A stretch of 64,000 bases of DNA. Origin: Piromyces finnis finn. Its lineage: Eukaryota; Fungi; Neocallimastigomycota. The translations under genes were made by a program, and so were the position numbers. Position 1 is the stretch's first letter. Each line of letters opens with the position of its first letter. Of this stretch, positions 1 to 20,172 are shown piece by piece. The stretch is from the NCBI GenBank assembly GCA_002104945.1, contig MCFH01000001.1:1178001-1242000 (forward strand), read 5' to 3'. The notes under the pieces are model-generated. The model had not been told where the DNA came from, searched no databases, and saw only the letters and a list, made by a program, of their open reading frames with translations.

Positions 1-49
1 AATTGTATTTGACTTCCAATGGGACACCGAGCCAAAGATCAAAATTTTG

Positions 50-3000
50 TCATGGAACAAAATTATGATCTCCATTGGTTGCGCTGGCCCTCCTGGCCTG
101 TCTTACTGTTTCTTCAGCATTGACGCTCTTGGATGTTGCTTCAAACCTTTTGAACATTGTCCATTGCTGGCCAATAGCAAAAGGCATGATTTTGGTTAGA
201 AGTTCCGCGGTTACCGTCAAGAATGGTGTTCCTTCATTAGTACCAGATTGAATCTGACGCTTACAAAGTTCTTTCCATTCCCTTGAATTGTAATTAATAT
301 TGTTAAAACTTCTTCCCCCAAGAAGGAATTTAAATATTTTACTGCACACACTAGAATAATCATACACATTAATATTCACCGGATTATTAGAACTATTACT
401 ATCATTAACTAAATTACTATCTAAATTAGAATTATTATCTTCACTATTGCTATCATTACTAATATTATTATTTCTATTATTGTTATTATTACTATTGTTA
501 CTATTACTATTGTTACTATTACTATTGTTATTACTACTATTGTTACTATTACTATTAATGTTATTACTATCTCTACTGATATTATCAATTTCATTATTAT
601 TGATAGGACTATTGGAATTACGTTGACTGAAAAAATTTAATAGCTGGACTATGGAATCATAATGTTTAATAAGGATATCTCTAAATGTTGGACAATCTAA
701 TAACCAATGTTTAATACTTTGATCTCCACACTTGCAACATGGACAGTAGTTAGGACAAACTGGATCAACAAATTTGGCAGCTTTGGCAACTCTAGCATCC
801 AACTTGTATCCGCTTCTTGCTTTCAATAGCCAGTAGAAGCCATAGGCAAACTCTGGGTACTCATAACATAATTTAATAAAATCTTTAGTTTCAATAAATT
901 TATTATCATCATAATATTGCGCTTTGATTGAATTCCCTTTGAGATCTTTCCAATAAAAGTTTTTAACTGCTTTAACATCTCCATGTTTCTTTAGTTTTTT
1001 ATCAAGTGTCCTACTTGATTTGCACCACGTGTATTTTCTAAATTTAGGAATGTAATTGACAAGGTGTGAGATAATACAATTTGAGTTTTTCCATTTGTTA
1101 AAACATCTAACCTGAGCTAACGCACATTTGGCTGACAATGGAGGAATATTCAAATCTTTTGAGATAGAGTATAAAGATATAAACGATACAGCTTTATGAA
1201 CTCCGGCAACCCATCGTATTCCTTTGTTAACATGCTTCTGAGCAATCCTAGACCTAGCTTTGTTGGATCCAAGTAATGGTGCAAAGTATGAAACTCTGCT
1301 AATCACTTGTGAGTTAAGTACTAGTTTTTTGAAAGGAATAGGAATATTAGGATTTCTTAAGAATTTACTGACTGAGAAAAGTCCTTTCAAAACCTTGTTA
1401 TTAAGAGCTTTAATTACTGGTTTAAGGGACAGATTCTTATCAAATGGAACACCAAGATAAGTATAGCAATCAGTAGTTGGAATGGGTTGTCCTGCTAAGT
1501 AAAATGTTGGATCTCTCTTGTTCTGATTTTCTATTGATTCAGGACGAATCACCATCGTTGAACATTTCTGGATACCAAATTCCATTTCATTATACAGTGC
1601 CCATTCATTAACTCTTCTAAGCATCTTTTTTAAGCATCCTCTTGTTGGAGCACAAATAACTATATCATCTGCAAAAAGTCCACCACAGCATCGAGTGTCA
1701 CCTAAACTGACTCCTAGATCTTCGCACTCTCTAAATATATCATTAATAAAGAGATTAAAGAGAATAGGAGAAAGAGGGCATCCTTGACGGACTCCTTTCT
1801 TCACATCAAAAGATTTCGAGAATTGTCCATCTAATTTGACATTAGCCTTAGATGTTAAATATAAATTTTTGATAAATTGTAAACTCTTACCTCGGATTCC
1901 TAAACAATCTAATTTATGGAGAATATTACCGATTGGGACTGAATCGTATGCTTTCCTGAGATCTAAAAAGGCCAAATATGTCTCTTTATTATCTAATTGA
2001 CGTCTACGGCATATTTCTTGGATTGAAATGAAAAGACTAATACTTTCTTCCTTTTTTCGAAAACCAAATTGTTCAGGTCTAATGAAATTATTCTTTAGAC
2101 CATATTCTGAGATTCTAGTGGTGACAATTTTGGAGATCAACTTAATACCATTATTGATAAGTGATATACCTCGATAGTTATCACAATCTGTCAAATCTCC
2201 CTTCTCAGGAATAGAAACAATACTGGATTCATTCCATGAGTTGGGGAAATCTCCATCCCAAATACGGTTAAATAATTTAAGAATAAAATTTAAACCATGA
2301 GCATCATTATCTGAAGTAGTATTACCAGAAGAATTATTATCTGTAGCATTATTAGAATCATTACTTGATGGAATTAATGCTTTGTAAAATTCAATTGGAA
2401 TACCATCCGGACCTGATGCTTTATAATTTGGAGTAGAGAGGATAGCTGACTTGACTTCATCAATACTAATATCTTGGTTGATATCCCACTCATCAAGCAT
2501 AGGAAGTGAAAAACGTTTATTCATTGGTTCTTCATACCAATGCTCCAAATCAAGACTTACACCACTTGGATCTGATGCAAGATTTTCGAAATGATCATGC
2601 CACACATCTAGTTGTTCTACCGTAGCAACAACTAATTCTCCATTTTTATTTTTAATTGGTTGAGCAATAAAGAAAGAATCTTTTCCAATTTTTGCAGTTT
2701 TCTTGATCCATTTCCAGGCCTTCTTAGGATTATGACTCTTCATATACTCACATCCTGTTTTAATCCAATGAAGATATTCTTGTTTCCTAAATTCATTACA
2801 TCTTTTGTGGATGTAATCAATGAGCTTACGGTAGATTTTAATTCTTTTAATAAATTCATCTATATCATAAATTCTTTCTTTTTTAAATCTCTTATACAAC
2901 TTCATTTTGATTTTTTGAAGATTAAAAATTTGTTGTGAAATATGAAATGAAGACTTTATAACATTATTTGCTGAGGTAATACTGAGCTCGTCTGCAATTG

Positions 3001-4573
3001 AAAAAGCAGTTGAAGTAAACTCTTTGGAAAGTTCATCTGTAGAAACATTAGGATCGTTGAATTTTGCTGAAAGTATTTGGAATTTATTATGACTGAGAAT
3101 AGATTCCTTTTCCTCAATACATTTTAATCTATTCCATTTCAGAATTTTCTTAGGAACATTAAAGTCATTAGAAAAATCTTCCATAGGAATAATTTTACCA
3201 TTAATAAGAAGTGGCTTATGGTCTGATACAGGATAAAAATTATTTATAAATGATCCTGAGTGAATAAGATCTTTCATCTTCGAATTGATAAGAGCATGGT
3301 CAATGTCGGAAGATTGATCACCTCGAGTCCAAGAGATAGTCGACCCTCTAAGCGGAAGAATTTCCCAATCTCCTAATCCATTAGTTGATAACCAGTTGGA
3401 TAATTTTACTTTAGACATATTAAAATCACCAACAAGAATCGATGGATGGGATGAATGAGTTTGTAACCACAAGCGAACTTCTAACTTTGCATGATCAACA
3501 TAGATGTTGTGATGACTATGAGGCATATAAACATTTCCAATCGAGCATTTGAATCTATTCCAAAGACTAAAAGTATAAATAGAAATAATATACTTTCCAG
3601 AGAAGTTTTCAAGTGAGGCTTGACATGAATTGTGAAAACCTAAATATAAACCTCTCATTCCCGGAACTGATTCGTCAGCTTTCTTGAAAAAGTGTCTATA
3701 GTTTCGCAAAGTAACACGACAAGGATAATCTGTATTCGAACCAGAACCATTACCAGTTTCTTGGAAACATAAAAATAATGGTTTGAAAATAGCAGTGAAA
3801 TAGCTAATACTATCTCTCTTTTCGTGATTCCACCCATTGGTGTTCCAACTAAGACAAAAAGAAAAGTTATCAGGCTTGTTGGATGAGGAAGAATCGTTGC
3901 TATTATTATTATAATTAAAGTCATCGTTATTAATGGATGATGCATCAGAGGAATAAGTAGAACTATTACTAGATGGCTGTGAAACTGAAGAACTATCAAC
4001 TATTGAACTGTTATCAGAGTTGATAGAACTATTAGAATTAATTGTTGAATGTTGAGATTGAAATTGTGTTTGCTGTAGATCTGGAATATTTTCATGATGG
4101 GAAACTTGTTGAAGATCTTGTTGAAGATCTTGTTGAAGATCGGATTGTTGATGAGATTGTTGAACTGATTGTTGAAATGATTGTTGAATAGAATGTTGAT
4201 GTTTATTAGAAACTAAAATTTTACGTTTGAGAGTGGAAAAAGTGTATTTGTGATTCCTTCTACTACGAGCTGAAAAGGAAATTGATGTAACTGAAAGTTT
4301 CTTCTTTAACATGTGTAAGATTTTAATACAATCTTTTGATGAACCATGAACCTTGACTAAGAAAAAGTGATCATTGAAAGTCTGAAAATATTTAACACTA
4401 ATAACTGAATTAAATTTATCTTCTAGAATAACCTCGAGTTTTTCCCATAGCATATTTACTGACCATGATCGAATACCACGGATAAAGAAGGAGCGAATAT
4501 CATCTAAGGGGATACCATAAGACCGGGTACCACGTCTGATATAATTCTTGTCTTTAATATAAAGGACTGACAT
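50..4573 (-). CDS. LINE polyprotein, 1507 aa: N-terminal RRM-like region, Gln/Ser/Asn linker, apurinic-type endonuclease, reverse transcriptase, C-terminal CCHC knuckle, Asn-rich tract
   Basis: APE motifs SWNTNG, CFQET, LVGDFN, SDIDHAL, SDHKPL. RT motifs PGPDG-like (SGPDGIP), DNYRGISL, QFGFR, FLDLRKAYDSV, GVRQGCPLSPILF, LFADD, YTYLGV. Knuckle CCKC-x8-HWLLDC. Confidence 0.95.
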   Translation of the reverse strand: MSVLYIKDKNYIRRGTRSYGIPLDDIRSFFIRGIRSWSVNMLWEKLEVILEDKFNSVISVKYFQTFNDHFFLVKVHGSSKDCIKILHMLKKKLSVTSISFSARSRRNHKYTFSTLKRKILVSNKHQHSIQQSFQQSVQQSHQQSDLQQDLQQDLQQVSHHENIPDLQQTQFQSQHSTINSNSSINSDNSSIVDSSSVSQPSSNSSTYSSDASSINNDDFNYNNNSNDSSSSNKPDNFSFCLSWNTNGWNHEKRDSISYFTAIFKPLFLCFQETGNGSGSNTDYPCRVTLRNYRHFFKKADESVPGMRGLYLGFHNSCQASLENFSGKYIISIYTFSLWNRFKCSIGNVYMPHSHHNIYVDHAKLEVRLWLQTHSSHPSILVGDFNMSKVKLSNWLSTNGLGDWEILPLRGSTISWTRGDQSSDIDHALINSKMKDLIHSGSFINNFYPVSDHKPLLINGKIIPMEDFSNDFNVPKKILKWNRLKCIEEKESILSHNKFQILSAKFNDPNVSTDELSKEFTSTAFSIADELSITSANNVIKSSFHISQQIFNLQKIKMKLYKRFKKERIYDIDEFIKRIKIYRKLIDYIHKRCNEFRKQEYLHWIKTGCEYMKSHNPKKAWKWIKKTAKIGKDSFFIAQPIKNKNGELVVATVEQLDVWHDHFENLASDPSGVSLDLEHWYEEPMNKRFSLPMLDEWDINQDISIDEVKSAILSTPNYKASGPDGIPIEFYKALIPSSNDSNNATDNNSSGNTTSDNDAHGLNFILKLFNRIWDGDFPNSWNESSIVSIPEKGDLTDCDNYRGISLINNGIKLISKIVTTRISEYGLKNNFIRPEQFGFRKKEESISLFISIQEICRRRQLDNKETYLAFLDLRKAYDSVPIGNILHKLDCLGIRGKSLQFIKNLYLTSKANVKLDGQFSKSFDVKKGVRQGCPLSPILFNLFINDIFRECEDLGVSLGDTRCCGGLFADDIVICAPTRGCLKKMLRRVNEWALYNEMEFGIQKCSTMVIRPESIENQNKRDPTFYLAGQPIPTTDCYTYLGVPFDKNLSLKPVIKALNNKVLKGLFSVSKFLRNPNIPIPFKKLVLNSQVISRVSYFAPLLGSNKARSRIAQKHVNKGIRWVAGVHKAVSFISLYSISKDLNIPPLSAKCALAQVRCFNKWKNSNCIISHLVNYIPKFRKYTWCKSSRTLDKKLKKHGDVKAVKNFYWKDLKGNSIKAQYYDDNKFIETKDFIKLCYEYPEFAYGFYWLLKARSGYKLDARVAKAAKFVDPVCPNYCPCCKCGDQSIKHWLLDCPTFRDILIKHYDSIVQLLNFFSQRNSNSPINNNEIDNISRDSNNINSNSNNSSNNNSNSNNSNSNNSNNNNNRNNNISNDSNSEDNNSNLDSNLVNDSNSSNNPVNINVYDYSSVCSKIFKFLLGGRSFNNINYNSREWKELCKRQIQSGTNEGTPFLTVTAELLTKIMPFAIGQQWTMFKRFEATSKSVNAEETVRQARRASATNGDHNFVP

Positions 4574-5216
4574 GATAATAAATTCTAATTAAAAATATTG
4601 AATATAAAATAAATACTAATAAAAATTATAAATATAACGTATATGGAAAAAAATCTGTCTCTCTCTCTCTTCTTAAAAGTACTGGATAGAACAAAAATTG
4701 TTACGATGCTTTGTTTAAAGTTTCTTTTTTTTGAATTCTAGTTGTAAATTTTCTTTAAAAATTCTAGTTTTGGTTTGTTGTTAGTAAATTCGATTCGCTT
4801 TTTGACACTAAAATTGTTTGACTTACTTTTCATTAAATATTTAAATTGGTAAAAAATTTGAATCAAGAATGTCGACACCAGAAAGCTTGTGAATAGTATT
4901 TTTACATGATGTAGAGTGAATCAGTCTCTTACAAAAAACAATACAACAATAGCTACATGAATATAAAAATACAATGCAAATGCTAAAGTTGACTACATTG
5001 GATTCTTACAAGAGAAGAGTAGTACTACATGAATACATGAATAAAAGAAAAAAATACAGCAACAAAATGTATTACTCTTCTAATTAAATACTATACAAAC
5101 TTACCTGAGTATCAAACATTCAACTTATTCATCAAATACTTAATTCGATGAATAAAATGTTTTTTAATCGCTCAGTACCATGAGCTTAGTCCTAATAATT
5201 TTCCCTTGAAGACTAA

Positions 5217-5463
5217 CCAAGCATCCATTGCGCAATGCTTGGATTTAATTCTTTCTACTCTCTCAGTACCATGAGCATGAGTAGACCCCCTTGAGAAATT
5301 ACATTTATTAAATAAATGAAGGCACGTTCCTAAGAGGGCACCAAGCATCCATTGCGCAATACTTGGATTTAATTCTTTCTACTCTCTCAGTACCATGAGC
5401 ATGAGTAGACCCCCTTGAGAAACTACATTTATTAAATAAATGAAGGCACGTTCCCAAGAGGGA
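5217..5463 (-). repeat. Two tandem 124-bp 5'-terminal monomers of LINE copy A (5217-5340, 5341-5463); copy B has one (10998-11120)
   Basis: Direct repeat ccaagcatccattgcgcaat...gttcc(t/c)aagaggg, with 3 internal substitutions between the two units. Confidence 0.92.
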
Positions 5464-5569
5464 TTGCAACATGGACAGTAGTTAGGACAAACTGGATCAA
5501 CAAATTTGGCAGCTTTGGCAACTCTAGCATCCAACTTGTATCCGCTTCTTGCTTTCAATAGCCAGTAGA
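5464..5569 (-). mobile_element. Middle piece of an older 5'-truncated LINE copy (host of the two insertions)
   Basis: 106 bp matching element-internal positions 732-837 (encodes FYWLLKARSG...CPNYCPCCK). Confidence 0.9.
5558..5569 (+). repeat. Target-site duplication of LINE copy B, left copy (ATAGCCAGTAGA; right copy 11121-11132)
   Basis: The same 12-mer lies directly before the poly(T) and directly after the element's 5' end. The first A may belong to the element, so 11-12 bp. Confidence 0.9.
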
Positions 5570-8500
5570 TTTTTTTTTTTTTTTTTTTTTTAACGGCATC
5601 AAATATTTTAAACTTTATTATTAATTTAATTAAAATTATAATACATGTAATATAAAAATTAAAATAAAATAAAAATAAAAAAAATATGTTTAAATAAACA
5701 CAAATGAATAAAAATTGGGTATAATGTATTCTAGTAATTTTAATTAAAGTAAGAAAGCCACTATCATACTAAAGTATAATAATTGTATTTGACTTCCAAT
5801 GGGACACCGAGCCAAAGATCAAAATTTTGTCATGGAACAAAATTATGATCTCCATTGGTTGCGCTGGCCCTCCTGGCCTGTCTTACTGTTTCTTCAGCAT
5901 TGACGCTCTTGGATGTTGCTTCAAACCTTTTGAACATTGTCCATTGCTGGCCAATAGCAAAAGGCATGATTTTGGTTAGAAGTTCCGCGGTTACCGTCAA
6001 GAATGGTGTTCCTTCGTTAGTACCAGATTGAATCTGACGCTTACAAAGTTCTTTCCATTCCCTTGAATTGTAATTAATATTGTTAAAACTTCTTCCCCCA
6101 AGAAGGAATTTAAATATTTTACTGCACACACTAGAATAATCATACACATTAATATTCACCGGATTATTAGAACTATTACTATCATTAACTAAATTACTAT
6201 CTAAATTAGAATTATTATCTTCACTATTGCTATCATTACTAATATTATTATTTCTATTATTGTTATTATTACTATTGTTACTATTACTATTGTTACTATT
6301 ACTATTGTTATTACTACTATTGTTACTATTACTATTAATGTTATTACTATCTCTACTGATATTATCAATTTCATTATTATTGATAGGACTATTGGAATTA
6401 CGTTGACTGAAAAAATTTAATAGCTGGACTATAGAATCATAATGTTTAATACGGATATCTCTAAATGTTGTACAATCTAATAACCAATGTTTAATACTTT
6501 GATCTCCACACTTGCAACATGGACAGTAGTTAGGACAAACTGGATCAACAAATTTGGCAGCTTTGGCAACTCTAGCATCCAACTTATATCCGCTTCTTGC
6601 TTTCAATAGCCAGTAGAAGCCATAGGCAAACTCTGGGTACTCATAACATAATTTAATAAAATCTTTAGTTTCAATAAATTTATTATCATCATAATATTGC
6701 GCTTTGATTGAATTCCCTTTGAGATCTTTCCAATAAAAGTTTTTAACTGCTTTAACATCTCCATGTTTCTTTAATTTTTTATCAAGTGTCCTACTTGATT
6801 TGCACCACGTGTATTTTCTAAATTTAGGAATGTAATTGACAAGGTGTGAGATAATACAATTTGAGTTTTTCCATTTGTTAAAACATCTAACCTGAGCTAA
6901 CGCACATTTGGCTGACAATGGAGGAATATTCAAATCTTTTGAAATAGAGTATAAAGATATAAACGATACAGCTTTATGAACTCCGGCAACCCATCGTATT
7001 CCTTTGTTAACATGCTTCTGAGCAATCCTAGACCTAGCTTTGTTGGATCCAAGTAATGGTGCAAAGTATGAAACTCTGCTAATCACTTGTGAGTTAAGTA
7101 CTAGTTTTTTGAAAGGAATAGGAATATTAGGATTTCTTAAGAATTTACTGACTGAGAAAAGCCCTTTCAAAACCTTGTTATTAAGAGCTTTAATTACTGG
7201 TTTAAGGGACAGATTCTTATCAAATGGAACACCAAGATAAGTATAACAATCAGTAGTTGGAATGGGTTGTCCTGCTAAGTAAAATGTTGGATCTCTCTTG
7301 TTCTGATTTTCTATTGATTCAGGACGAATCACCATCGTTGAACATTTCTGGATACCAAATTCCATTTCATTATACAATGCCCATTCATTAACTCTTCTAA
7401 GCATCTTTTTTAAGCATCCTCTTGTTGGAGCACAAATAACTATATCATCTGCAAAAAGTCCACCACAGCATCGAGTGTCACCTAAACTGACTCCTAGATC
7501 TTCGCACTCTCTAAATATATCATTAATAAAGAGATTAAAGAGAATAGGAGAAAGAGGGCAACCTTGACGGACTCCTTTCTTCACATCAAAAGATTTCGAG
7601 AATTGTCCATCTAATTTGACATTAGCCTTAGATGTTAAATATAAATTTTTGATAAATTGTAGACTCTTACCTCGGATTCCTAAACAATCTAATTTATGGA
7701 GAATATTACCGATTGGGACTGAATCGTATGCTTTCCTGAGATCTAAAAAGGCCAAATATGTCTCTTTATTATCTAATTGACGTCTACGGCATATTTCTTG
7801 GATTGAAATGAAAAGACTAATACTTTCTTCCTTTTTTCGAAAACCAAATTGTTCAGGTCTAATGAAATTATTCTTTAAACCATATTCTGAGATTCTAGTG
7901 GTGACAATTTTGGAAATCAACTTAATACCATTATTGATAAGTGATATACCTCGATAGTTATCACAATCTGTCAAATCACCCTTCTTAGGAATAGAAACAA
8001 TACTGGATTCATTCCATGAGTTGGGGAAATCTCCATCCCAAATACGGTTGAATAATTTAAGAATAAAATTTAAACCATGAGCATCATTATCTGAAGTGGT
8101 ATTACCAGAAGAATTATTATCTGTAGCATTATTAGAATCATTACTTGATGGAACTAATGCTTTGTAAAATTCAATTGGAATACCATCCGGACCTGATGCT
8201 TTATAATTTGGAGTAGTGAGGATAGCTGACTTGACTTCATCAATACTAATATCTTGGTTGATATCCCACTCATCAAGCATAGGAAGTGAAAAACGTTTAT
8301 TCGTTGGTTCTTCATACCAATGCTCCAAATCAAGACTTACACCACTTGGGTCTGATGCAAGATTTTCGAAATGATCATGCCACACATCTAGTTGTTCTTC
8401 TGTAGCAACAACTAATTCTCCATTTTTATTTTTAATTGGTTGAGCAATAAAGAAAGAATCTTTTCCTATTTTTGCAGTTTTCTTGATCCATTTCCAGGCC

Positions 8501-11120
8501 TTCTTAGGATTATGACTCTTCATATACTCACATCCTGTTTTAATCCAATGAAGATATTCTTGCTTCCTAAATTCATTACATCTTTTGTGGATGTAATCAA
8601 TGAGTTTACGGTAGATTTTAATTCTTTTAATAAATTCATCTATATCATAAATTCTTTCTTTTTTAAATCTCTTATACAACTTCATTTTGATTTTTTGAAG
8701 ATTAAAAATTTGTTGTGAAATATGAAATGAAGACTTTATAACATTATTTGCTGAGGTAATACTGAGCTCGTCTGCAATTGAAAAAGCAGTTGAAGTAAAC
8801 TCTTTGGAAAGTTCATCTGTAGAAACATTAGGATCGTTGAATTTTGCTGAAAGTATTTGGAATTTATTATGACTGAGAATAGATTCCTTTTCCTCAATAC
8901 ATTTTAATCTATTCCATTTCAGAATTTTCTTAGGAACATTAAAGTCATTAGAAAAATCTTCCATAGGAATAATTTTACCATTAATAAGAAGTGGCTTATG
9001 GTCTGATACAGGATAAAAATTATTTATAAATGATCCTGAGTGAATAAGATCTTTCATCTTCGAATTGATAAGAGCATGGTCAATGTCGGAAGATTGATCA
9101 CCTCGAGTCCAAGAGATAGTCGACCCTCTAAGCGGAAGAATTTCCCAATCTCCTAATCCATTAGTTGATAACCAGTTGGATAATTTTACTTTAGACATAT
9201 TAAAATCACCAACAAGAATCGATGGATGGGATGAATGAGTTTGTAACCACAAGCGAACTTCTAACTTTGCATGATCAACATAGATGTTGTGATGACTATG
9301 AGGCATATAAACATTTCCAATCGAGCATTTGAATCTATTCCAGAGACTAAAAGTATAAATAGAAATAATATACTTTCCAGAGAAGTTTTCAAGTGAGGCT
9401 TGACATGAATTGTGAAAACCTAAATATAAACCTCTCATTCCCGGAACTGATTCGTCAGCTTTCTTGAAAAAGTGTCTATAGTTTCGCAAAGTAACACGAC
9501 AAGGATAATCTGTATTCGATCCAGAACCATTACCAGTTTCTTGGAAACATAAAAATAATGGTTTGAAAATAGCTGTGAAATAGCTAATACTATCTCTCTT
9601 TTCGTGATTCCACCCATTGGTGTTCCAACTAAGACAAAAAGAAAAGTTATCAGGCTTGTTGGATGAGGAAGAATCGTTGCTATTATTATTATTATTAAAG
9701 TCATCGTTATTAATGGATGATGCATCAGAGGAATAAGTAGAACTATTACTAGATGGCTGTGAAACTGAAGAACTATCAACTATTGAACTGTTATCAGAGT
9801 TGATAGAGCTATTAGAATTAATTGTTGAATGTTGAGATTGAAATTGTGTTTGCTGTAGATCTGGAATATTTTCATGATTGGAAACTTGTTGAAGATCTTG
9901 TTGAAGATCTAGTTGAAGATCGGATTGTTGATGAGATTGTTGAACTGATTGTTGAAATGATTGTTGAATAGAATGTTGATGTTTATTAGAAACTAAAATT
10001 TTACGTTTGAGAGTGGAAAAAGTGTATTTGTGATTCCTTCTACTACGAGCTGAAAAGGAAATTGAGGTAACTGAAAGTTTCTTCTTTAACATGTGTAAGA
10101 TTTTAATACAATCTTTCGATGAACCATGAACCTTGACTAAGAAAAAGTGATCATTGAAAGTCTGAAAATATTTAACACTAATAACTGAATTAAATTTATC
10201 TTCTAGAATAACCTCGAGTTTTTCCCATAGCATATTTACTGACCATGATCGAATACCACGGATAAAGAAGGAGCGAATATCATCTAAGGGGATACCATAA
10301 GACCGGGTACCACGTCTGATATAATTCTTGTCTTTAATATAAAGGACTGACATGATAATAAATTCTAATTAAAAATATTGAATATAAAATAAATACTAAT
10401 AAAAATTATAAATATAACGTATATGGAAAAAAAATCTGTCTCTCTCTCTCTTCTTAAAAGTACTGGATAGTACAAAAATTGTTACGATGCTTTGTTTAAA
10501 GTTTCTTTTTTTTGAATTCTAGTTGTAAATTTTCTTTAAAAATTCTAGTTTTGGTTTGTTGTTAGTAAATTCGATTCGCTTTTTGACACTAAACTTGTTT
10601 GACTTTACTTTTCATTAAATATTTAAATTGGTAAAAAATTTGAATCAAGAATGTCGACACCAGAAAGCTTGTGGATAGTATTTTTACATGATGTAGAGTG
10701 AATCAGTCTCTTACAAGAAACAATACAACAATAGCTACATGAATATAAAAATACAATGCAAATGCTAAAGTTGACTACATTGGATTCTTACAAGAGAAGA
10801 GTAGTACTACATGAATACATGAATAAAAGAAAAAATACAGCAACAAAATGTATTACTCTTCTAATTAAATACTATACAAACTTACCTGAATATCAAACAT
10901 TCAACTTATTCATCAAATACTTAATTCGATGAATAAAATGTTTTTTAATCACTCAGTACCATGAGCTTAGTCCTAATAATTTTCCCTTAAAGACTAACCA
11001 AGCATCCATTGCGCAATGCTTGGATTTAATTCTTTCTACTCTCTCAGTACCATGAGCATGAGTAGACCCCCTTGAGAAACTACATTTATTAAATAAATGA
11101 AGGCACGTTCCCAAGAGGGC
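5570..11120 (-). mobile_element. Full-length LINE, copy B (~5.55 kb) with poly(A) tail and TSD
   Basis: 22-nt poly(A) (T-run 5570-5591), AATAAA at 5619-5614, ~240-nt 3' UTR, intact ORF, ~770-nt 5' UTR, flanking TSD. Confidence 0.97.
5830..10353 (-). CDS. LINE polyprotein, 1507 aa (APE + RT + CCHC), copy B
   Basis: Same motifs as copy A. By eye it differs from copy A at 10 residues and keeps the canonical IPKKGD. Confidence 0.95.
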   Translation of the reverse strand: MSVLYIKDKNYIRRGTRSYGIPLDDIRSFFIRGIRSWSVNMLWEKLEVILEDKFNSVISVKYFQTFNDHFFLVKVHGSSKDCIKILHMLKKKLSVTSISFSARSRRNHKYTFSTLKRKILVSNKHQHSIQQSFQQSVQQSHQQSDLQLDLQQDLQQVSNHENIPDLQQTQFQSQHSTINSNSSINSDNSSIVDSSSVSQPSSNSSTYSSDASSINNDDFNNNNNSNDSSSSNKPDNFSFCLSWNTNGWNHEKRDSISYFTAIFKPLFLCFQETGNGSGSNTDYPCRVTLRNYRHFFKKADESVPGMRGLYLGFHNSCQASLENFSGKYIISIYTFSLWNRFKCSIGNVYMPHSHHNIYVDHAKLEVRLWLQTHSSHPSILVGDFNMSKVKLSNWLSTNGLGDWEILPLRGSTISWTRGDQSSDIDHALINSKMKDLIHSGSFINNFYPVSDHKPLLINGKIIPMEDFSNDFNVPKKILKWNRLKCIEEKESILSHNKFQILSAKFNDPNVSTDELSKEFTSTAFSIADELSITSANNVIKSSFHISQQIFNLQKIKMKLYKRFKKERIYDIDEFIKRIKIYRKLIDYIHKRCNEFRKQEYLHWIKTGCEYMKSHNPKKAWKWIKKTAKIGKDSFFIAQPIKNKNGELVVATEEQLDVWHDHFENLASDPSGVSLDLEHWYEEPTNKRFSLPMLDEWDINQDISIDEVKSAILTTPNYKASGPDGIPIEFYKALVPSSNDSNNATDNNSSGNTTSDNDAHGLNFILKLFNRIWDGDFPNSWNESSIVSIPKKGDLTDCDNYRGISLINNGIKLISKIVTTRISEYGLKNNFIRPEQFGFRKKEESISLFISIQEICRRRQLDNKETYLAFLDLRKAYDSVPIGNILHKLDCLGIRGKSLQFIKNLYLTSKANVKLDGQFSKSFDVKKGVRQGCPLSPILFNLFINDIFRECEDLGVSLGDTRCCGGLFADDIVICAPTRGCLKKMLRRVNEWALYNEMEFGIQKCSTMVIRPESIENQNKRDPTFYLAGQPIPTTDCYTYLGVPFDKNLSLKPVIKALNNKVLKGLFSVSKFLRNPNIPIPFKKLVLNSQVISRVSYFAPLLGSNKARSRIAQKHVNKGIRWVAGVHKAVSFISLYSISKDLNIPPLSAKCALAQVRCFNKWKNSNCIISHLVNYIPKFRKYTWCKSSRTLDKKLKKHGDVKAVKNFYWKDLKGNSIKAQYYDDNKFIETKDFIKLCYEYPEFAYGFYWLLKARSGYKLDARVAKAAKFVDPVCPNYCPCCKCGDQSIKHWLLDCTTFRDIRIKHYDSIVQLLNFFSQRNSNSPINNNEIDNISRDSNNINSNSNNSSNNNSNSNNSNSNNSNNNNNRNNNISNDSNSEDNNSNLDSNLVNDSNSSNNPVNINVYDYSSVCSKIFKFLLGGRSFNNINYNSREWKELCKRQIQSGTNEGTPFLTVTAELLTKIMPFAIGQQWTMFKRFEATSKSVNAEETVRQARRASATNGDHNFVP

Positions 11121-11265
11121 ATAGCCAGTAGAAGCCATAGGCAAACTCTGGGTATTCATAACATAATTTAATAAAATCTTTAGTTTCAATAAATTTATTA
11201 TCATCATAATATTGCGCTTTGATTGAATTCCTTTTGAGATCTTTCCAATAAAAGTTTTTAACTGC
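11121..11265 (-). mobile_element. 5'-most piece of the older 5'-truncated LINE copy
   Basis: 145 bp matching element-internal 826-970, with private substitutions (ggtattcata vs ggtactcata; aattccttttgag vs aattccctttgag). Homology stops abruptly at 11265. Confidence 0.9.
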
Positions 11266-11911
11266 AACAAACTATAATGTCAATACATAAAACAAACTTT
11301 TTCTCTCCTTAATAAACAACCTTTCTATTTTCCAATTTTTAATTTAAAAACACAAAAAAATCCAATTCATTTATTTTTTTTTTTTTTATTTACTTATTTT
11401 TTAATTAAAAAAAGTAAACAAATATTATATAATTACAAAAATTTAATTTATAAATAATATATATTAATAAATTTATTTTTATAAAACATATGTATAACTT
11501 TTTACTTTGAAATTATAAATAAAATCATTCTCTTTCTTTATATTTTTTTATATTTATATTTATTTTATATTTATTTTTATTGTTTTTATTTATTGTGTTG
11601 TATTTTTTGTTGTTTTTTGTTTTTTTTTTGTTTGTTTGTTTGATTTTTTTCTTTCTTTCAATATTTTATATATATATAATTCAATTTTTTATTATAAATT
11701 ATTATTTATAATTTTGTCATTCTTCATTCTTTCATAACATTATAATTACTAGAATCTTTTTACACTAAAAAAATTTAATAATGAAATACTATGAATTAAA
11801 AAGAAAAAATCAAATTTTTATCTTTTTTTCTTTTTATAAAAAATTTTGGTAATAATTAAAATTGAGGTATCTAAAAAAATTTCTTCAATACTTTAATTAT
11901 AAGATATTCAT

Positions 11912-13561
11912 CTATTTAGCTTCTTCACCTTCAGCAGCTGGCTTAGCTTCGGCCTTTTCGTCGTCCTTACCTTCTTGAAGGTCAGAAGTCCAGAGAGTTA
12001 AGTTATCACGAAGTAATTGCATGATTAAAGTACTGTCCTTGTATGATTCTTCACTTAAAGTATCGAGTTCAGCAATAGCATCATCGAAGGCTTGCTTGGC
12101 AAGGTGGCAAGCTCTGTCTGGTGAACTTAAGATTTCATAGTAGAAGACAGAGAAGTTAAGGGCAAGACCTAAACGGATTGGGTGAGTTGGAGCAAGTTCA
12201 GTTTGAGCAATGTCAGTAGCGTTCTTGTAAGCATCGTGAGCTTGAGTGGCAGCTTCCTTACGCTTTTCACCAACAGCGAATTCAGCAAGGTAACGGTGGT
12301 AATCACCCTTCATCTTGTAGTAGAAGACCTTAGATTCACCAGCAGCAGCAGATGGAATAAGGTGTTCGTCTAAGACGTTTAAGATATCAGAACAAACTTC
12401 AGTAAGTTCATTTTCAATAGTTTGACGGTAGGCTCTGATTTGGTTAACTTGAGCTTCGTTACCCTTACTTTCTTCCTTTTGTTCAATGGAAGAAACAATT
12501 CTCCAAGAAGCACGGCGAGCACCAATGACGTTCTTGTAAGCGACGGAGAGAAGGTTACGTTCTTCAACGGAAAGTTCAAGACCGAGCTAAAAATATATTA
12601 TTTATTTACAATTAGATCTATATTTTTTTAAATTAAATTTTTTATTTATATATATTATTTACCTTAGCAACTTCCTATTATTTTCCAATGTAATTGTACA
12701 TGTAAACAAATCATATTAGATCACTATTTCAAATAAATAATTTAAAAATATTTTTATTTTAAATTTTAAGCAATTCTTACCTTCATGTATGAAACCATTT
12801 CTATATATTTATACAATAAAAATTCAATATGATCAATATTTATTCTCTTTCTTTTATGAAGAAATACAAATTTACTATTTTGTAATTAACACTTACCATC
12901 GTATCTTTCAGCTTGTTCGGCTAATTTAGCCATGTAAACTTGATGTTCTCTGTCTATTAAACATATATTTAAAAAATATTAAATATAAAAGAATATTAAT
13001 ACTTTTTATCTTTTTGAAATATTTTTTATTTGATCATTTCAATTTTTATTTATACTCTGAATATTTTTTATTTATTTATTTTGATCATTTTTTTTATCTT
13101 TATTTATTGTTTTTTCCTTTACTATAATACAATATTATTTAACTATATATTTTCTATATTTTAGTCCTTCTTATTTTATATTTATTTGGTCAAGTATACA
13201 TCTTAAAATAACTAAATGTTTTATGAATGAACCATTAACTTTTGGAAGATACATCTATAAAAATTTTATCATATATTTTACTTAAACCTCTATTTCTTTT
13301 ATTTTATTTTTATTATATTATTATTGTTGTTTATATATATTTAAATAAAACCGTTCACTTTTTTTTATCTAAATATTATTTATGCTATTACTTTTTTTTT
13401 TGTTTATTTATTTTTAAATTGATCCCTAAATGTTTGTTTATTTATTACATTATCATTATTATGTACTAATTCTAATTTATTTAATAACACCACTTTCTTT
13501 ATTAATAATATCTTATATATATTTTAATATGTAATATATTTTTATTCATACCGTCAGCCAT
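11912..13561 (-). CDS. BMH1: 14-3-3 protein, 257 aa, 5 exons (13561-13552, 12953-12897, 12800-12781, 12674-12663, 12586-11912)
   Basis: Spliced product [62 protein letters not shown]...[12 protein letters not shown]...[19 protein letters not shown]...[13 protein letters not shown]. All introns are GT-AG with consistent phases. The symbol denotes the family, not strict orthology. Confidence 0.97.
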
Positions 13562-16070
13562 TTCTTTATTTATTTATTTTTAAAACTTTTGTTGTTCTTG
13601 ATTATTTTATGAAAAAAAAATTAAAAACAGATAAAATATTTTTAAAATGAAAAAAAAAAATATTTATTCTATAATTTTTCTTAACTTAATGAAAAAAAAT
13701 ATTTTAATAATCTTAATAATTTGTTTTAATTTTCAATATATTAGAATATATTTGAAATTATATTAATATAATATTATTGGAAAATAATATAACATAATTA
13801 TAATTAGATATATTATTATATTTATATTGTTTATATCATTATATAAAATTAAACTATTTTATATTAAAATAATTATTATATTTTAAAAAACTTTTTTATT
13901 AATTTTTTATTTATTTATAATTTAATAATATATAAATTGTTTTTTTATATTTAATACTTAAAAGTTGCTATTTTTTTATTTATTATTCGATAAATATATT
14001 ATTTATATATAGTAATTATATCGATTAACTATATTCCACGATGTTTATAAATAGTCAATGATATATATTACAAATAAAAAAAAAACATTTAAAAAAAGAT
14101 GTTAAAATATTAAATGATAGTATTTTTTATTTAAATATAAATAAAAACATAGTTTTTTGTTTATAATCATAAATATTATTACACTTTAATGAAATTAAAA
14201 AGAATATCATTTAAAAATAATTATTTAAAATTAATTTTAAATGATTTTAATTTTCTTCTTTTTATTTATTTATTTATTTATTTATTTTATTTATTTATTA
14301 AAATATTGTTTGTTGCTTATTTGTTTGTTTGTTAATAAGTAAAAAAAAAGTAGGGAAAGGCTTATTTATCCTCCTACAATATATTAAGGATTTTACTTAT
14401 CAAAGCATTGGTTCATAAATAGAGTAAAAAAAAAGCCAAAATTTCTTCTAATATTATGCTAATTAATTTAATAATAAATATATAATATTACTAATTAAAA
14501 ATTAATTTATTATTATTCTAATAATATTAAAAATATATATATATTTGTCTTTTTACAAAACAATCTTTTAAAAGAATACATTAATCTATGTTTTATAAAG
14601 TAAAACATCTATAGAATAATCCTACAATTTTTCCTCTGCCATCAAAATTTCTAAACAAAATTAGTATAAGAAATATTTTTTTTCCCTTTTCATCATGTTT
14701 TAGTTATTTTGTATGTACTTTAAAATCTTTTTTTTATTATTATTATTCTCATGATATTCATTCTCAACACACCCATTCAAACCTCTTCTTGATAAGAAAT
14801 ATGTATTGAAATAAATTAATTTAATTTATTGGATTCAATTATTTATTTAATATTTATTTATTTATTCATTAAATATTGAAATGGATAATCCTTAAATCAT
14901 ATTAATACATTTTAATATATTGTATATTGTAGGATTAATTAATTAATAGTATTTAATAAAATTGGTGAATTGTACATAAAATAAATTAACACCTTAATTG
15001 AAATTAAGATTATAAAGTAATATATTTATATTATATATTATAATATTAGCATAATTAGAGTATTATAAATAATTAGATTAAAAACTTAAAAAATACATAC
15101 TATTTTAATTTGATTCAGTTTTTAATATAATAAACAAATATGTTCAATATATTATATTATACAATAATATATTTTAAAATGTATTGCAATATTTAACGGT
15201 TTATATTATTAAAAAATTTCTTTTACATTCTATTCTAATTAAGTTTTTAAAAAAAATTAATTTAAAGGTAATCTTACTTTGTTTTAGGAAAATTAAAATT
15301 AAAAGGTAAAATAAATTACTTTTTTTAGTAATAATGTAATACTTTGATTAATGTGTTTGTATACATTATGTATATTGTATACATTAGTTTAAGAAGTAAA
15401 AAGTTAAAAAAGGCAGTCAATGAAATAACGAAAGCATTAAAAAATATAGGAAGATCTTATCAAAAAAAATATATATTACATTATAATATATTATATATTA
15501 ATAGATCATACTTTTTTTAATTTTAGTACGGCATTATTTTTAAATTCATCCAGAGAATAAATTAAATATATACGTACATACATATATTCAAAGATAACTT
15601 ATTTAAAATGTTTATTTATTAGGATTTTACACATGCTATAAGCATGCAATAAATAAAAAAAAACTATGGTATAATTAGTGGTATAAAATTTGTTAGAATT
15701 ATAGAACCAATAATGATAATGGTTGTATCAACCAAATAATAACTGATTAAAAGAACTAAATTGATTGGATAATGTAATCAGTGGCTTCCATATTTTACAA
15801 TACATAAATAAAAACGGCGGAAATTATTATTTTTATGATTAATATGATATGATAATAATTAGTATATTGTATTTATAGTATTTATAGTATTTATAGTATA
15901 ATAAGAGATAGGAAATAGAAAATCTTGATCTTAATAAAGTTAAAAAATTAAACCATAAATTTAAAGCTAGAAATAGAATTTTGATGCTAAAAATAACTAT
16001 TTTTAAAAATAATATATAGTATTTATATTTATATTTATAATTACTAAAATTAACGTATTTAGAGTATATA

Positions 16071-16156
16071 TTATGTTTATTATTATTATTATTATTATTC
16101 TAATTATTCTAATTATTATTATTATTATTATGTTTATTATTATGTTTATTATTATG

Positions 16157-16206
<50 letters not shown>

Positions 16207-16325
16207 GTTTATTATTATTATTATTATGTTTATTATTATGTTTATTATTATTATTATTATTATTATGTTTATTATTATGTTTATTATTATTATTATTATT
16301 ATTATGTTTATTATTATGTTTATTA
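16071..16325. repeat. Compound microsatellite (ATT)n interspersed with ATGTTT
   Basis: Directly visible; it generates the spurious poly-Ile and poly-Asn ORFs. Confidence 0.9.
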
Positions 16326-17002
16326 ATGTTGTTGCCGTTATTATATTTATTAGTTATCACATCACATCTATATACTTGTTAAATAATTTTAATTTATTGT
16401 AGAGTTATTTAAAATTTTCTCAAATCTGGCAGTAAAATAAACAAAAAGTTAAGGTGTTTTATTATATTATTTGATTTGTTAATAAATTTTAATCATTATG
16501 GTGTATGGTCTTAATGTAGAATTTCTATATAAAAAAAGGGTATATATTATGGAAATAAAATCGATATTTTTAAATTTTGTGGTGTTTCTTTATCGTGAAT
16601 TTCAAATTTTTTAATTTTATACGATTTAATTATACCATTTTTAATATAAAAAAAACTAAATAATATTGTTTTAATTAATCAATATTTGACATTTGATCTT
16701 CAAATCTTAATAACCTAAAGTTTTTAATTTATATACAATTGTATGGTTTATACATAAATCAATTAAAATAACCATTACATAAATTACATTACATCAAAAT
16801 AATTTGTTCAATTGCTTCTGCTTGTAATATATTTATTTATTTACTATTATATTTTAAAGGCTTATTCATACTATAGCTGTAAATGTTATCTAAGAGTTTA
16901 TAAAAGCATTCATTAACAATGAAATTTTTTTATATATGTCATAAAAATAATAATTTTAAAAACCGAACACTAGTTTTAAGAATTATAAAATATTAAATTT
17001 AT

Positions 17003-17014
17003 TTATTTATTCAT

Positions 17015-17072
<58 letters not shown>
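17003..17072. repeat. (TTTA)n microsatellite; similar tracts at ~25640-25772 and ~37787-37855
   Basis: Directly visible tetranucleotide runs. Confidence 0.85.
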
Positions 17073-17075
<3 letters not shown>

Positions 17076-18198
17076 AATTAAATGAATACCAAAAAAAAAA
17101 AAAAAAAAAATTAAATGTTATATTTAAAACACAGTCAAAAATTTCAATCCTAAGATTTTTGTTATTACTGATGGATAAAATAAGTGATTAATATTGTTTT
17201 TTTAAAAAAAAAAAAAAAAGAAAATGTACTTTATATTTACTATGATAATATTCATAGATATCTTTTAAATACAAATTTATTTTTATCTTAATATGGAACA
17301 ATGGTAATTTTCATTTCTAGTATTGTTAATTAAACGAAAAGGATATTTCATTATTTTTAGAAATAACACAAAATATTTTATTATACTTTTTTTTTTTTTT
17401 TTTGATAGGTTAGACATTTAATAATTTATAATAATATATTAAACTAACCTTATAAAAAAAAAGTTTAACCATTGTTAAATGCTTATTAAAACAACAAGAT
17501 TTGTAAGAAAAGAAAGAAAGAAAACACACAAATCATAATATTCTATTGTTATAATTGTTATAATATAGATATATTGATAAATTAAAAAAAAAAATTATAA
17601 ATTTTCAAAGGTAAAATAAAAGCCTTTACAAAATATTAAATAAATATATTTAATATTTTTTATCTTTTTTTTTAATTTTTTTTATTTATTTTATTTATTA
17701 ATTATTTGCATGTCCTTAACAATAAATAATAAAATAAAGCATAAAAAAGGTAAAAGGATAATAGGATGGAAAGATTTATTTTTATCTATTTTGTTTTTAT
17801 ATAAAAAATCATATCTTTATCTTCTTTTATTATGATTACTATTTGCCTTTTTATTACTTTTTTGTTATTATTTCTTGATATCATTATAAATTTTTATACT
17901 AGTTTTCAATTATTAATGTAATTATTATTGTTAATTTTAATATTTTTTAATGGTAGTTTTTTTTATTATGATTTTTTATATGAAATTGAATATAATAATT
18001 ATGAATAATCTTGTAAAAGGTATTAAGATTTAGTTTTTTTTTTTGTTTGTTTGTTTATTTTGTTCTCTTTAACCAATTATATTTTAATTATACTAATGTG
18101 TGTAGCATTATGAATGATTTACTATAAAACTTTTTTTTTTCCTTTAGTATTATTAAAATAATTGAATTTAGAATGAAATCTATTTTCTGTTGGTGAGT

Positions 18199-19901
18199 TT
18201 ACTTGCTCTTAGCTCTTTCCTTTTGAGCTTCATTTAACTTAACTTGTAGTACTTCAATGATAGCTATTTTATTTCATATTAATTAGCAATTATCGTCGTT
18301 ATTATTATTACCATTGTTAATTGTTTGAATCCATAAATGTCAAAAAAAAATTATTACCATAGATCATTAATTTATAATTGTAATATTATTAAATATTACA
18401 GGATTTTAGGATAAAATCAAAATATAAAATATAGAAACAAATAAATAATAAATAATATATTGTTATTATAAATTGAAAATGAATTATTAAATATTGTTTA
18501 ATAAATTATTGGAATAATAAAAGTTACATTTATTTTGATCTTGTCTACTAATAATAGAATCTTGGAGCTTTTTTAAGTTTTCTTTTAAGAAAGTGTTCTT
18601 CTTTTCAAAGAACTTTTTAGTATCATCTAAGTTCTAATTTTATTACAATTGACATTATTTTTATTAAAAAGTGAAAATATATGAAAATATATTATATCAG
18701 CCAAAGTCAATAATAGAAACATTTATGTTATAATAGTATAACAATTTAATATTTTGTTGATATTTTGGTGATATATTTATTTAGTAATCTCTAGAAATAA
18801 TATTTATATTATTCGTATATTATTATCGTTATTATTGTTATTATTTTATACCTTTTCAACGTAGTAACCAGTACCAACATCAACAATTAATTTATCTTTG
18901 TTAACTAATTGACCTGGAACATATAAGTAAGAACAGCGAAAAAAAAAAAAAAAAAAAAAAAAGAGTTAAGGTAATTGATATTCATCTTTTTGTGAATAAA
19001 TATATGTTCAATTTTTCTATTTCTACACTTTTATGTTAAAAAAAAAAAAAAAAAAAAAGGATATAGAAACAGTAAGTGGAACAAGAATATTGGCACCTAT
19101 ATTTTATTATTAAAAATATAGAATTACTATATATGCGATTTTATTTTTTAAAATATATATACATTCACATGTAAAATATAATATATTTTGAAAATTTTAC
19201 CATCATCTAATTTCTTAACAGTATTAACACATTCAATGTTAGTATTAAATTTTGTTTGAGCTAATTTTAAAGCAGAGTATGATTCAGTTAAATGTTGGAT
19301 TTCCTGTGTTTAAGAATTAGTTTTTATATTTGAAAATTAAAAAAAATAAAATATATTAAAATATATTAGTATTATTCTTTTTCATATATATATGTAACTA
19401 TTTTTTTTTTATCTCTATATATAGATTATTTTTTTTCTTTAATAATTTTTAAAGTATAATATTTTATTTAATAATATAATATTTTTGATTTCTATTTGTA
19501 AATTTGATTAAATATACATATACTGGTATATAATATATATAATTATACTACATCAGAAATTTAATAATATTAAAAAAACTTTTGATGAAATTAAATTGGT
19601 TTGCAATATATTTTTGACATATTATCAAAAATCCAATATTTTTTTTTTTTAGTTTTAGGAATTATAAGCATATATTGTTGGCGTTTTGTTTTAGTAATGA
19701 ATTCTTATATATTTGCTTTGATTTTATTTTAAAATTGATTTATTATTATCAATACTATTATTGTAGAAAAAGGTACACAAAAATAGAGTTAAATCGAATA
19801 ACTTTTTATTATTATTATTATTGTTGCTTTTGGAATTACAAATTTCTTTGATACTCTTGTTATAAGAATAAATTGATTTTTTTTTTTTTTTTTTTTTTTT
19901 A

Positions 19902-19932
<31 letters not shown>

Positions 19933-20172
19933 TTATTTTATTTTATTTTATTTTATTTTATTTTATTTTATTTTATTTTATTTTATTTTATTTTAGATTC
20001 CTTTTCCTTTATGCTTCTATAGTAATGTTTAAATTAAAGTTTTTTAATTATATAAATGATAAAGAAAAAATACCTCTTCAATTTGTTGTCTAACAGCTTG
20101 AAGTTGTTCCATTGGAAGATCAGCAAGATCAATAACAGTAGTAGTTGCCTTATCCTTATCGCTTGATGACAT
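18199..20172 (-). CDS. PFDN5: Prefoldin subunit 5 (alpha-type), 6 exons (20172-20074, 19303-19201, 19096-19065, 18926-18852, 18633-18528, 18263-18199)
   Basis: Spliced product [59 protein letters not shown]...[45 protein letters not shown]...; motifs ILVPLT-S-LYVPG and [11 protein letters not shown]. Not present in the ORF track. Confidence 0.93.
18927..19064 (-). other. U12-type (minor spliceosome) AT-AC intron, 138 nt, phase 0
   Basis: 5' splice site ATATCCTTTT, branch-point-like TTACCTTAAC (18974-18965), 3' end TTCTTAC. Removing it joins VPLTVS to LYVPG in frame. Confidence 0.88.
19874..19995. repeat. Poly(T) followed by (TTTTTA/TTTTA)n inside PFDN5 intron 1
   Basis: Directly visible. 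Confidence 0.85.

Follow-up and report, generated by a model that had tools for sequence, protein, structure and literature searches.

The window analysed here is a stretch of 64,000 nucleotides of the anaerobic gut fungus Piromyces finnis, contig positions 1,178,001-1,242,000 of MCFH01000001.1, which at 2,625,575 bp is the largest contig of an assembly of 56,455,805 bp in 232 contigs. The window is very AT-rich (13-33% G+C). At its left edge stands a pile of nested copies of one long interspersed nuclear element (LINE), ahead of which lies a 14-3-3 gene. Position 1 is the window start, and negative positions lie to the left of it, in 20 kb of added left flank. All element copies of the pile within the window are on the minus strand, and their common orientation had already been recognized in a preliminary description of this DNA. 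Two full-length copies (A and B), a truncated copy that hosts both (host C), and their target-site duplications are arranged as follows.

-1210 to -1199: left duplication of host C, AACAAACTATAA, 12 bases, just before the poly(T) of C
-1192 to -243, minus strand: host C, 3' piece (element 1-958), 97.5% identical to B, with its own poly(T)
-257 to -243: left duplication of copy A, TTGCAACATGGACAG, 15 bases, directly preceding the poly(T) of A
-242 to 5463 (1 to 5463 in the window), minus strand: copy A, full length, 99.1% identical to B
-242 to 0, minus strand, left of the window: 3' end and poly(A) of copy A, from the leftward extension aligned to B
about -242 to -190, minus strand, left flank: poly(T) of copy A
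5464-5478: right duplication of copy A, TTGCAACATGGACAG; possibly extended by the T at 5479, giving 15-16 bp
5464-5569, minus strand: host C, middle piece (element 943-1048) between A and B, 100% identical to 732-837
5558-5569: left duplication of copy B, ATAGCCAGTAGA, 12 bp, repeated at 11121-11132
5570-11120, minus strand: copy B, full length, 5551 bp, from self-BLAST
5570-5591, minus strand: poly(T) of copy B, 22 nt, at the plus-strand start of B
11121-11132: right duplication of copy B, ATAGCCAGTAGA, flanking the other end of B
11121-11265, minus strand: host C, 5' piece (element 1037-1181), 98.6% identical to 826-970, with 2 private differences
11266-11277: right duplication of host C, AACAAACTATAA, after the 5' truncation point of C at 11265

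Window positions 1-5340 align with 5781-11121 at 99.1% identity with 45 mismatches (self-BLAST and a repeat finder), so that the locus looks like a tandem duplication with a period of 5780 bp. The preliminary description had read it instead as separate insertions, and this reading holds: each copy has its own target-site duplication, and the host is restored on removal of the newcomers. The period of 5780 bp is not that of a simple duplication, because copy A has an extra 123-bp 5' monomer. The coordinates that had been given for A, B, and the spacer pieces were all reproduced by self-comparison. The predictions made for the left flank are also borne out by the added sequence, in which the poly(T) of A (expected near -210), a duplication beginning TTGCAAC before it, a continuation of the host with its own poly(T), and a duplication matching the bases from 11266 on are all present at the positions listed above. 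Since the host resumes on the left with its own poly(T) and duplication, C is a 5'-truncated copy of 1181 bp and A and B are later insertions, at 223 bp and 133 bp from its front (5') edge, respectively. The site of A interrupts the CPCCK codons within the CCHC motif, confirming its placement in the zinc-knuckle codons.

The private substitutions of the copies should be noted. Set against 18 other copies over the 3' 1.16 kb, host C has 4 private substitutions, B has 1, and A has none, while a further copy described below (D) has 39. That C is a third copy with differences of its own, as had been claimed, is also seen in the two private differences within 11121-11265. Host C is older than A and B, because it carries more private changes. 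The locus is the product of three separate retrotransposition events, C first and then A and B inside C. A tandem duplication, whether by unequal crossing-over, by one reverse-transcription event on several templates, or as an assembly artefact, would account for the 5780-bp period and the 99% identity, and template switching by the reverse transcriptase of the element is indicated by internal patches at 5' junctions elsewhere. Nevertheless, such an origin is extremely improbable, considering that A, B, and C each have their own exact duplication of 12-16 bp, in the size range of 27 insertions elsewhere, that taking out A and B leaves one unbroken host, and that A and B differ at 45 sites while C has more private changes and is hence older. 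One complementary DNA that switched among three RNAs, returning 12-16 nt back, was ruled out by the greater age of C. The single-event model was also rejected on the lengths of these returns, which are distributed like the duplications at non-self sites.

The coding regions and the 5' monomers of the two full-length copies are located as follows.

50 to 4573, minus strand: copy A, single open reading frame (ORF), 1507 aa, RVT_1 E 6e-35
5830-10353, minus strand: copy B, ORF, 1507 aa, RVT_1 E 1e-35
5216-5338 and 5340-5462, minus strand: copy A, two tandem 5' monomers of 123 bp, 97.6-99.2% identity
10997-11119, minus strand: copy B, one 5' monomer, from the repeat finder and self-BLAST

The ORF encodes an N-terminal part of ~230 aa, an apurinic/apyrimidinic endonuclease (APE)-type nuclease, a reverse transcriptase, and a CCHC motif, in this order. 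In the ORF of B, the endonuclease profile PF03372 (Exo_endo_phos) is covered as a whole (E 2.3e-7, 31.2 bits with a cut-off of 24.5), and zf-RVT matches weakly at the CCHC motif. The N-terminal ~230 aa gave no Pfam match. A 12-nt repeat in the ORF (4093-4211 and 9873-9991; residues ~130-165) encodes a Gln-rich stretch near the N terminus, and a long Asn/Ser-rich low-complexity stretch (residues ~1290-1400) follows the CCHC motif. The best solved relative of the reverse transcriptase is that of human L1 ORF2p (E 5e-33); a cluster look-up of the ORF protein returned generic APE and reverse transcriptase clusters only. The element has a 3' poly(A), with poly(T) runs of 9-57 nt at the sampled junctions, no long terminal repeats (LTRs), frequent 5' truncation, and target-site duplications of variable length. 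It is a young, abundant, poly(A)-tailed APE-type non-LTR retrotransposon, and it inserts by ordinary target-primed reverse transcription. The order of APE nuclease, reverse transcriptase, and Cys-rich tail, the poly(A), the 5' truncation, and the variable duplications are common to the element and human L1 ORF2p, whereas the element has one 1507-aa ORF with the N-terminal part of ~230 aa and no separate ORF1. Mouse L1 has 5' monomer repeats like those of the element. The number of 123-bp monomers per genomic copy ranges from 1 to about 6 (e.g. L006, C186:345245-345794), and partial monomers exist, with monomer-end matches 69 or 32 bp apart (e.g. C18:37128-37295 and C1:2521227-2521288). A tblastn search with the ORF found no further copy in the window between 11.3 and 64 kb.

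The pile continues to the left of the window, where the following copies were found.

-2795 to -1269, co-oriented: copy D, 1551 bp, 97.1% identical to B, with 39 private differences
element 1733-1802 and element 1834-1867 (the two sides of D), co-oriented: fragment E, the host of D, with a 31-bp target deletion
-6544 to -2597, co-oriented: LINE of a second family (L031) with a 1316-aa open frame, ~71% nucleotide identity in the reverse transcriptase region
-9316 to -6972, co-oriented: older pieces of the first family, 92-95% identity

Fragment E stands at the front of the second-family LINE, and 36 bp ahead of E is the insertion site of C. The identity to B rises stepwise toward the gene side (92, 92, 95, 97, 98, 99, and 100%), where the youngest copies are found.

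The gene side of the pile is occupied by the 14-3-3 gene. The distances of the five events behind its stop codon, counted in pre-insertion coordinates, are given with it.

11912-12586, minus strand (co-oriented with the LINEs): 3' exon of the 14-3-3 gene, Pfam 14-3-3 E 4e-56, reaching the C-terminal end of the profile
event C: 646 bp behind the 14-3-3 stop
event E: 682 bp behind the 14-3-3 stop
event D: 747 bp behind the 14-3-3 stop
event B: 779 bp behind the 14-3-3 stop
event A: 869 bp behind the 14-3-3 stop

The pile front, that is, the 5' edge of C, lies 647 bp downstream of this stop codon, and the five events share a zone of 223 bp behind the gene. A scan of the window for transfer RNA (tRNA) genes found none, and an Rfam scan of window positions 11000-20000 gave no match at E up to 1. 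An RNA polymerase III (Pol III) gene as the cue was rejected for this locus, there being no Rfam match near the pile.

We counted the family by whole-genome pattern searches, which gave 583 3' ends and 573 monomer ends, with 394 copies reaching element position 1900 and 348 reaching position 3700. The family amounts to roughly 2.2 Mb, or ~4% of the 56.46-Mb genome, and its 3' ends are spread across all large contigs. Full-length copies make up about half of the total, and copies are 99% identical with intact ORFs, which marks the family as very recently active. Taken in contig order, the first 100 3' ends without a mismatch provided 95 unique young 3' junctions. Co-oriented element sequence adjoins the poly(T) within 15 nt in 37 of these junctions, and six more lie 16-150 bp from a co-oriented 5' edge; a single junction (L124, at a contig end) adjoins inverted element sequence, and the remaining 51 have no element nearby. 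The junctions in or beside self are thus 43 co-oriented versus 1 inverted, the orientation bias has a binomial P of 7e-11, and the self share of 39-45% is far above the 4% expected (binomial P ~1e-30). Nesting in self in the same orientation is more frequent than chance.

The preliminary description had proposed that the family prefers its own 3' coding region. The excess of copies in or beside self is borne out, with 37 plus 6 of the 95 junctions at self sites against a genome share of ~4%; the fixed 3'-coding target is not. The host positions of the 37 self junctions range from 289 to 5550 of 5551, and 10 of them are in the 5' monomer. The proposed mechanism, in which the endonuclease or the ribonucleoprotein (RNP) reads a specific stretch of ~250 bp, draws on the sites of A and B, which at element 958 and 1048 are separated by 90 bp, and on junction L054 close by at 951. 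The junction census contradicts it: only three of the 37 self junctions fall in element 943-1181, two of which are A and B themselves. Close insertion pairs are also found in other hosts at other element positions. L047/L048 is a close analogue of A and B, with two copies ~30 bp apart in one host, at element 1978 and 2006. We further examined both flanks of 43 copies (full length by pattern spacing) together with 13 loci fetched whole, and obtained 30 insertions with clean duplications of 10-15 bp. The 30 duplication sites share no target motif beyond a weak A|T at the nick, where the A at -1 is partly forced by trimming of the poly(T). A reading of a specific self sequence is very improbable on these grounds. 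Target-specific APE-type LINEs of the Tx1 and R1 clades, to which the family had been compared, also sit inside repeats, but they use one defined target sequence. This comparison fails because the common factor among the newcomers is position and not sequence.

At some 5' junctions, co-oriented patches of internal element sequence, 30-150 bp in length, lie between the 5' end of the copy and the target duplication. Examples are 146 bp of element 3770-3915 in L076, the same patch in L132 (C7:48792-48937), 36 bp in L008 (7130-7166), and four internal patches in a row in L001 (7523-7708). These patches may be read as template switching by the reverse transcriptase. The flanks, the 146-bp patch, and the duplication are identical in L076 and L132 (C7); L123 and L140 (C61) likewise present the same insertion on two small contigs. 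Each pair is probably a duplicated or haplotype contig.

The high self share could also arise in two other ways. In one, insertion is untargeted and the outcome is filtered, genic hits being lost and inverted nests being lost by hairpin instability or left unassembled. The genome is compact, the sole inverted case (L124) is at a contig end, and several of the sampled copies are on small contigs, all of which would fit such filtering. However, even if only one third of the genome were tolerant, the expected self share would be ~12%, and the observed 39-45% departs from it with P 2e-13. In the other, resident copies attract newcomers without a fixed site, through chromatin marks, transcription, or RNA pairing, and the genes nearby are incidental. 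The self junctions, about 10-fold above the expectation from genome share and co-oriented at 43:1, are what such attraction would give. The positions of the newcomers within their hosts and relative to the neighboring genes bear on both of these explanations.

The host resumes beyond the newcomer in 13 self junctions, most with a duplication of 11-16 bp or of 31 bp; in four of the 13 it resumes across a deletion of 9, 31, or 413 bp or behind a short patch. The 5' end of the host can be placed in 11 nested cases, ten with a duplication and D with its 31-bp target deletion. In all 11, the newcomer is 6-342 bp from the 5' end of the host, at 0.81-1.00 of the host length from the 3' end, though the hosts themselves range from 398 to 5651 bp. 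If insertions were evenly spread over the hosts, the chance of this outcome would be about 2e-8. Other copies stand 36-135 bp in front of a 5' edge. Filtering of untargeted insertions does not predict clustering at the 5' edge of the host. Attraction by residents leaves unexplained why newcomers enter only the 20% of the host nearest to the 5' edge, whatever its sequence, and why some land 36-135 bp outside the copy.

The surroundings of the copies were compared at 17 independent loci (the window and 16 others), scored by ORFs. In 13 of the 16 other loci, the first long ORF on the 5' side of the element is co-oriented with it and ends 339-1313 bp from the front; in the other three, no ORF is present within 0.8-1.4 kb of the front. 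With the window locus included, a co-oriented ORF lies ahead in 14 of the 17 loci and an opposite one in none (14/14, two-sided P 1e-4), and the distance from stop to front is 339-1313 bp with a median of about 580. The neighbors verified by Pfam encode GH18, a CBM10 dockerin protein, uS7, uL1, isocitrate dehydrogenase, CotH, argininosuccinate synthase, EF-2, and 14-3-3; all nine are co-oriented, with the C terminus of the profile toward the LINE. Single copies, pile fronts, and promoterless truncated copies (five) share this one gene-side arrangement.

On the 3' side of two copies, L004 and L009, the nearest long ORF is directed at the LINE, its end being 509 bp (L004) and 879 bp (L009) away from the poly(A). 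The ORF at L004 looks like a real gene, while that at L009 is Asn/Ser-rich and may be low-complexity sequence. Judged by these frames, the two copies would lie between convergent genes.

Filtering gives no reason to expect an upstream gene that is co-oriented in 14 loci and opposite in none, promoterless truncated copies included, and it is at odds with the toleration of convergent genes on the 3' side (L004 and L009). Taken with the self share, this makes filtering an improbable explanation. Attraction by residents also leaves unexplained the un-nested single copies that stand behind genes at the distance and in the direction of the pile fronts. As the principal cause of the nests, it is doubtful, yet clearly less so than filtering.

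We therefore favor, with a probability of roughly 0.6, a reading in which ordinary target-primed insertion chooses a zone behind genes that is defined by position and strand, and in which self-nesting is largely a by-product. In its more specific form, this is targeting by an APE-type LINE relative to the 3' ends of genes transcribed by RNA polymerase II (Pol II), at ~0.35-0.9 kb beyond the stop codon and co-oriented with the gene, with the nests as a by-product; this form we propose tentatively, at slightly below even odds. The family would not recognize its own sequence; its preference would be for a zone of a few hundred bp behind transcribed genes, with both the distance and the strand fixed. 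At the window locus, C came first, 647 bp behind the stop codon of the co-oriented 14-3-3 gene, and the full-length A and B entered C later. Once the zone is occupied, the next copy would enter the resident, or land just ahead of it, at its 5' end, and piles would consequently grow like strata in one direction with the youngest copy nearest to the gene. Candidates for the mark of the zone are an R-loop, a gap between nucleosomes, and the region of Pol II termination. The strand nicked for priming is the template strand of the upstream gene, which would fit a cue tied to read-through transcription or to termination.

Several observations weigh against targeting of such a zone. Two nested cases have no visible host edge nearby, one at a distance of at least 267 bp (L060) and the other across a 413-bp gap (L081). 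In about one third of the testable self junctions (L052, L088, L079, L006, and others) the host does not resume; in these pairs, the left copy may have entered the right one at its poly(A) tail, a separate route to head-to-tail pairs. Such insertion could feed the hot spot in the monomer, because full-length 5' ends would then adjoin poly(T). The gene-side support comes from 17 loci scored by ORFs rather than by gene models or mapped transcript ends. Inverted nests may be under-represented through instability or assembly breaks. An occupied-site rate of 40% needs either a very skewed choice of genes or attraction by resident copies, which are inseparable here. Added attraction by residents may thus operate along with the zone, and is perhaps required for this rate.

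Compact genomes need safe sites for active retrotransposons. The known havens are tRNA genes (in Dictyostelium, and for Ty1 and Ty3 of yeast), telomeres (in Drosophila, and for Cnl1 of Cryptococcus), centromeres (for Zepp), and ribosomal DNA (for R1 and R2). To our knowledge, hardly any transposon biology has been described for anaerobic gut fungi, and the present family gives them a very recently active LINE. Self-nesting as such is already known, because Cnl1 and Zepp show it. Cnl1 of Cryptococcus neoformans/deneoformans is a non-LTR element that is often 5' truncated and nests in its own copies in tandem orientation (PMC9942834; bioRxiv 10.1101/2021.08.11.455996). It resembles the Piromyces element as a fungal non-LTR retrotransposon that builds nested, co-oriented self arrays. 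The Cnl1 arrays are subtelomeric, whereas the Piromyces pile is found at 1.18 Mb in a contig of 2.63 Mb, with the copies scattered over many contigs behind ordinary genes. Cnl1 is called CRE-type in one review (PMC7175516); the nuclease of the Piromyces element is of the APE type.

Zepp and Zepp-like L1 elements of green algae (PMC3446292; PMC8226300) are LINEs with poly(A) that occur in clusters of nested copies, most of them 5' truncated. The clusters arise by insertion into existing copies, as in Piromyces, but Zepp has one cluster per chromosome, thought to be centromeric, instead of many small piles and single copies. Further differences from Zepp are the full length of about half of the Piromyces copies and the position of the piles, each of which faces the 3' end of a gene. 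Confinement to telomeres or centromeres is not seen in Piromyces, where the window is in mid-contig, the 3' ends are dispersed, and the piles are flanked by housekeeping genes. The Piromyces family is set apart from the known self-nesting elements by its 5'-edge rule and by its dispersed setting next to genes.

In mode of action, the closest analogue would be TRE5-A and TRE3 of Dictyostelium. TRE5-A integrates ~50 bp upstream of tRNA genes via TFIIIC and TFIIIB (PMC3159450). The likeness would be a target set by distance and direction from a transcription unit and not by DNA sequence. The two systems differ in that the TRE elements use tRNA genes, while the Piromyces element stands by Pol II protein-coding genes, in a wider zone of a few hundred bp that lies behind the gene. 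No precedent for a LINE directed to the rear of Pol II genes emerged from a literature search, although a negative of this kind is only weak evidence. If the reading given above is correct, a LINE that aims behind protein-coding genes on one strand would be a new solution to the safe-haven problem, a Pol II-terminator counterpart of the tRNA gene-directed LINEs of Dictyostelium. Some feature of transcription termination would then be readable by the endonuclease or the RNP of a LINE. "Russian-doll" nests of LINEs would also receive a simple account without recognition of sequence, and this account may extend to other self-nesting elements.

Two further observations concern a separate array and the right-hand side of the window. 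At G000 (C1:1538277-1541134), four 3' ends lie 942-945 bp apart on one strand and belong to truncated copies of ~0.9 kb arranged head-to-tail. The junctions of this array share the extra bases TTCTTCAGCA, and the array could be explained by repeated insertion or by unequal crossing-over. To the right of the 14-3-3 gene, the intergenic sequence contains long ATT/ATTT/ATTTT microsatellite tracts, at 15990-16320, 16990-17080, and 19870-19995.

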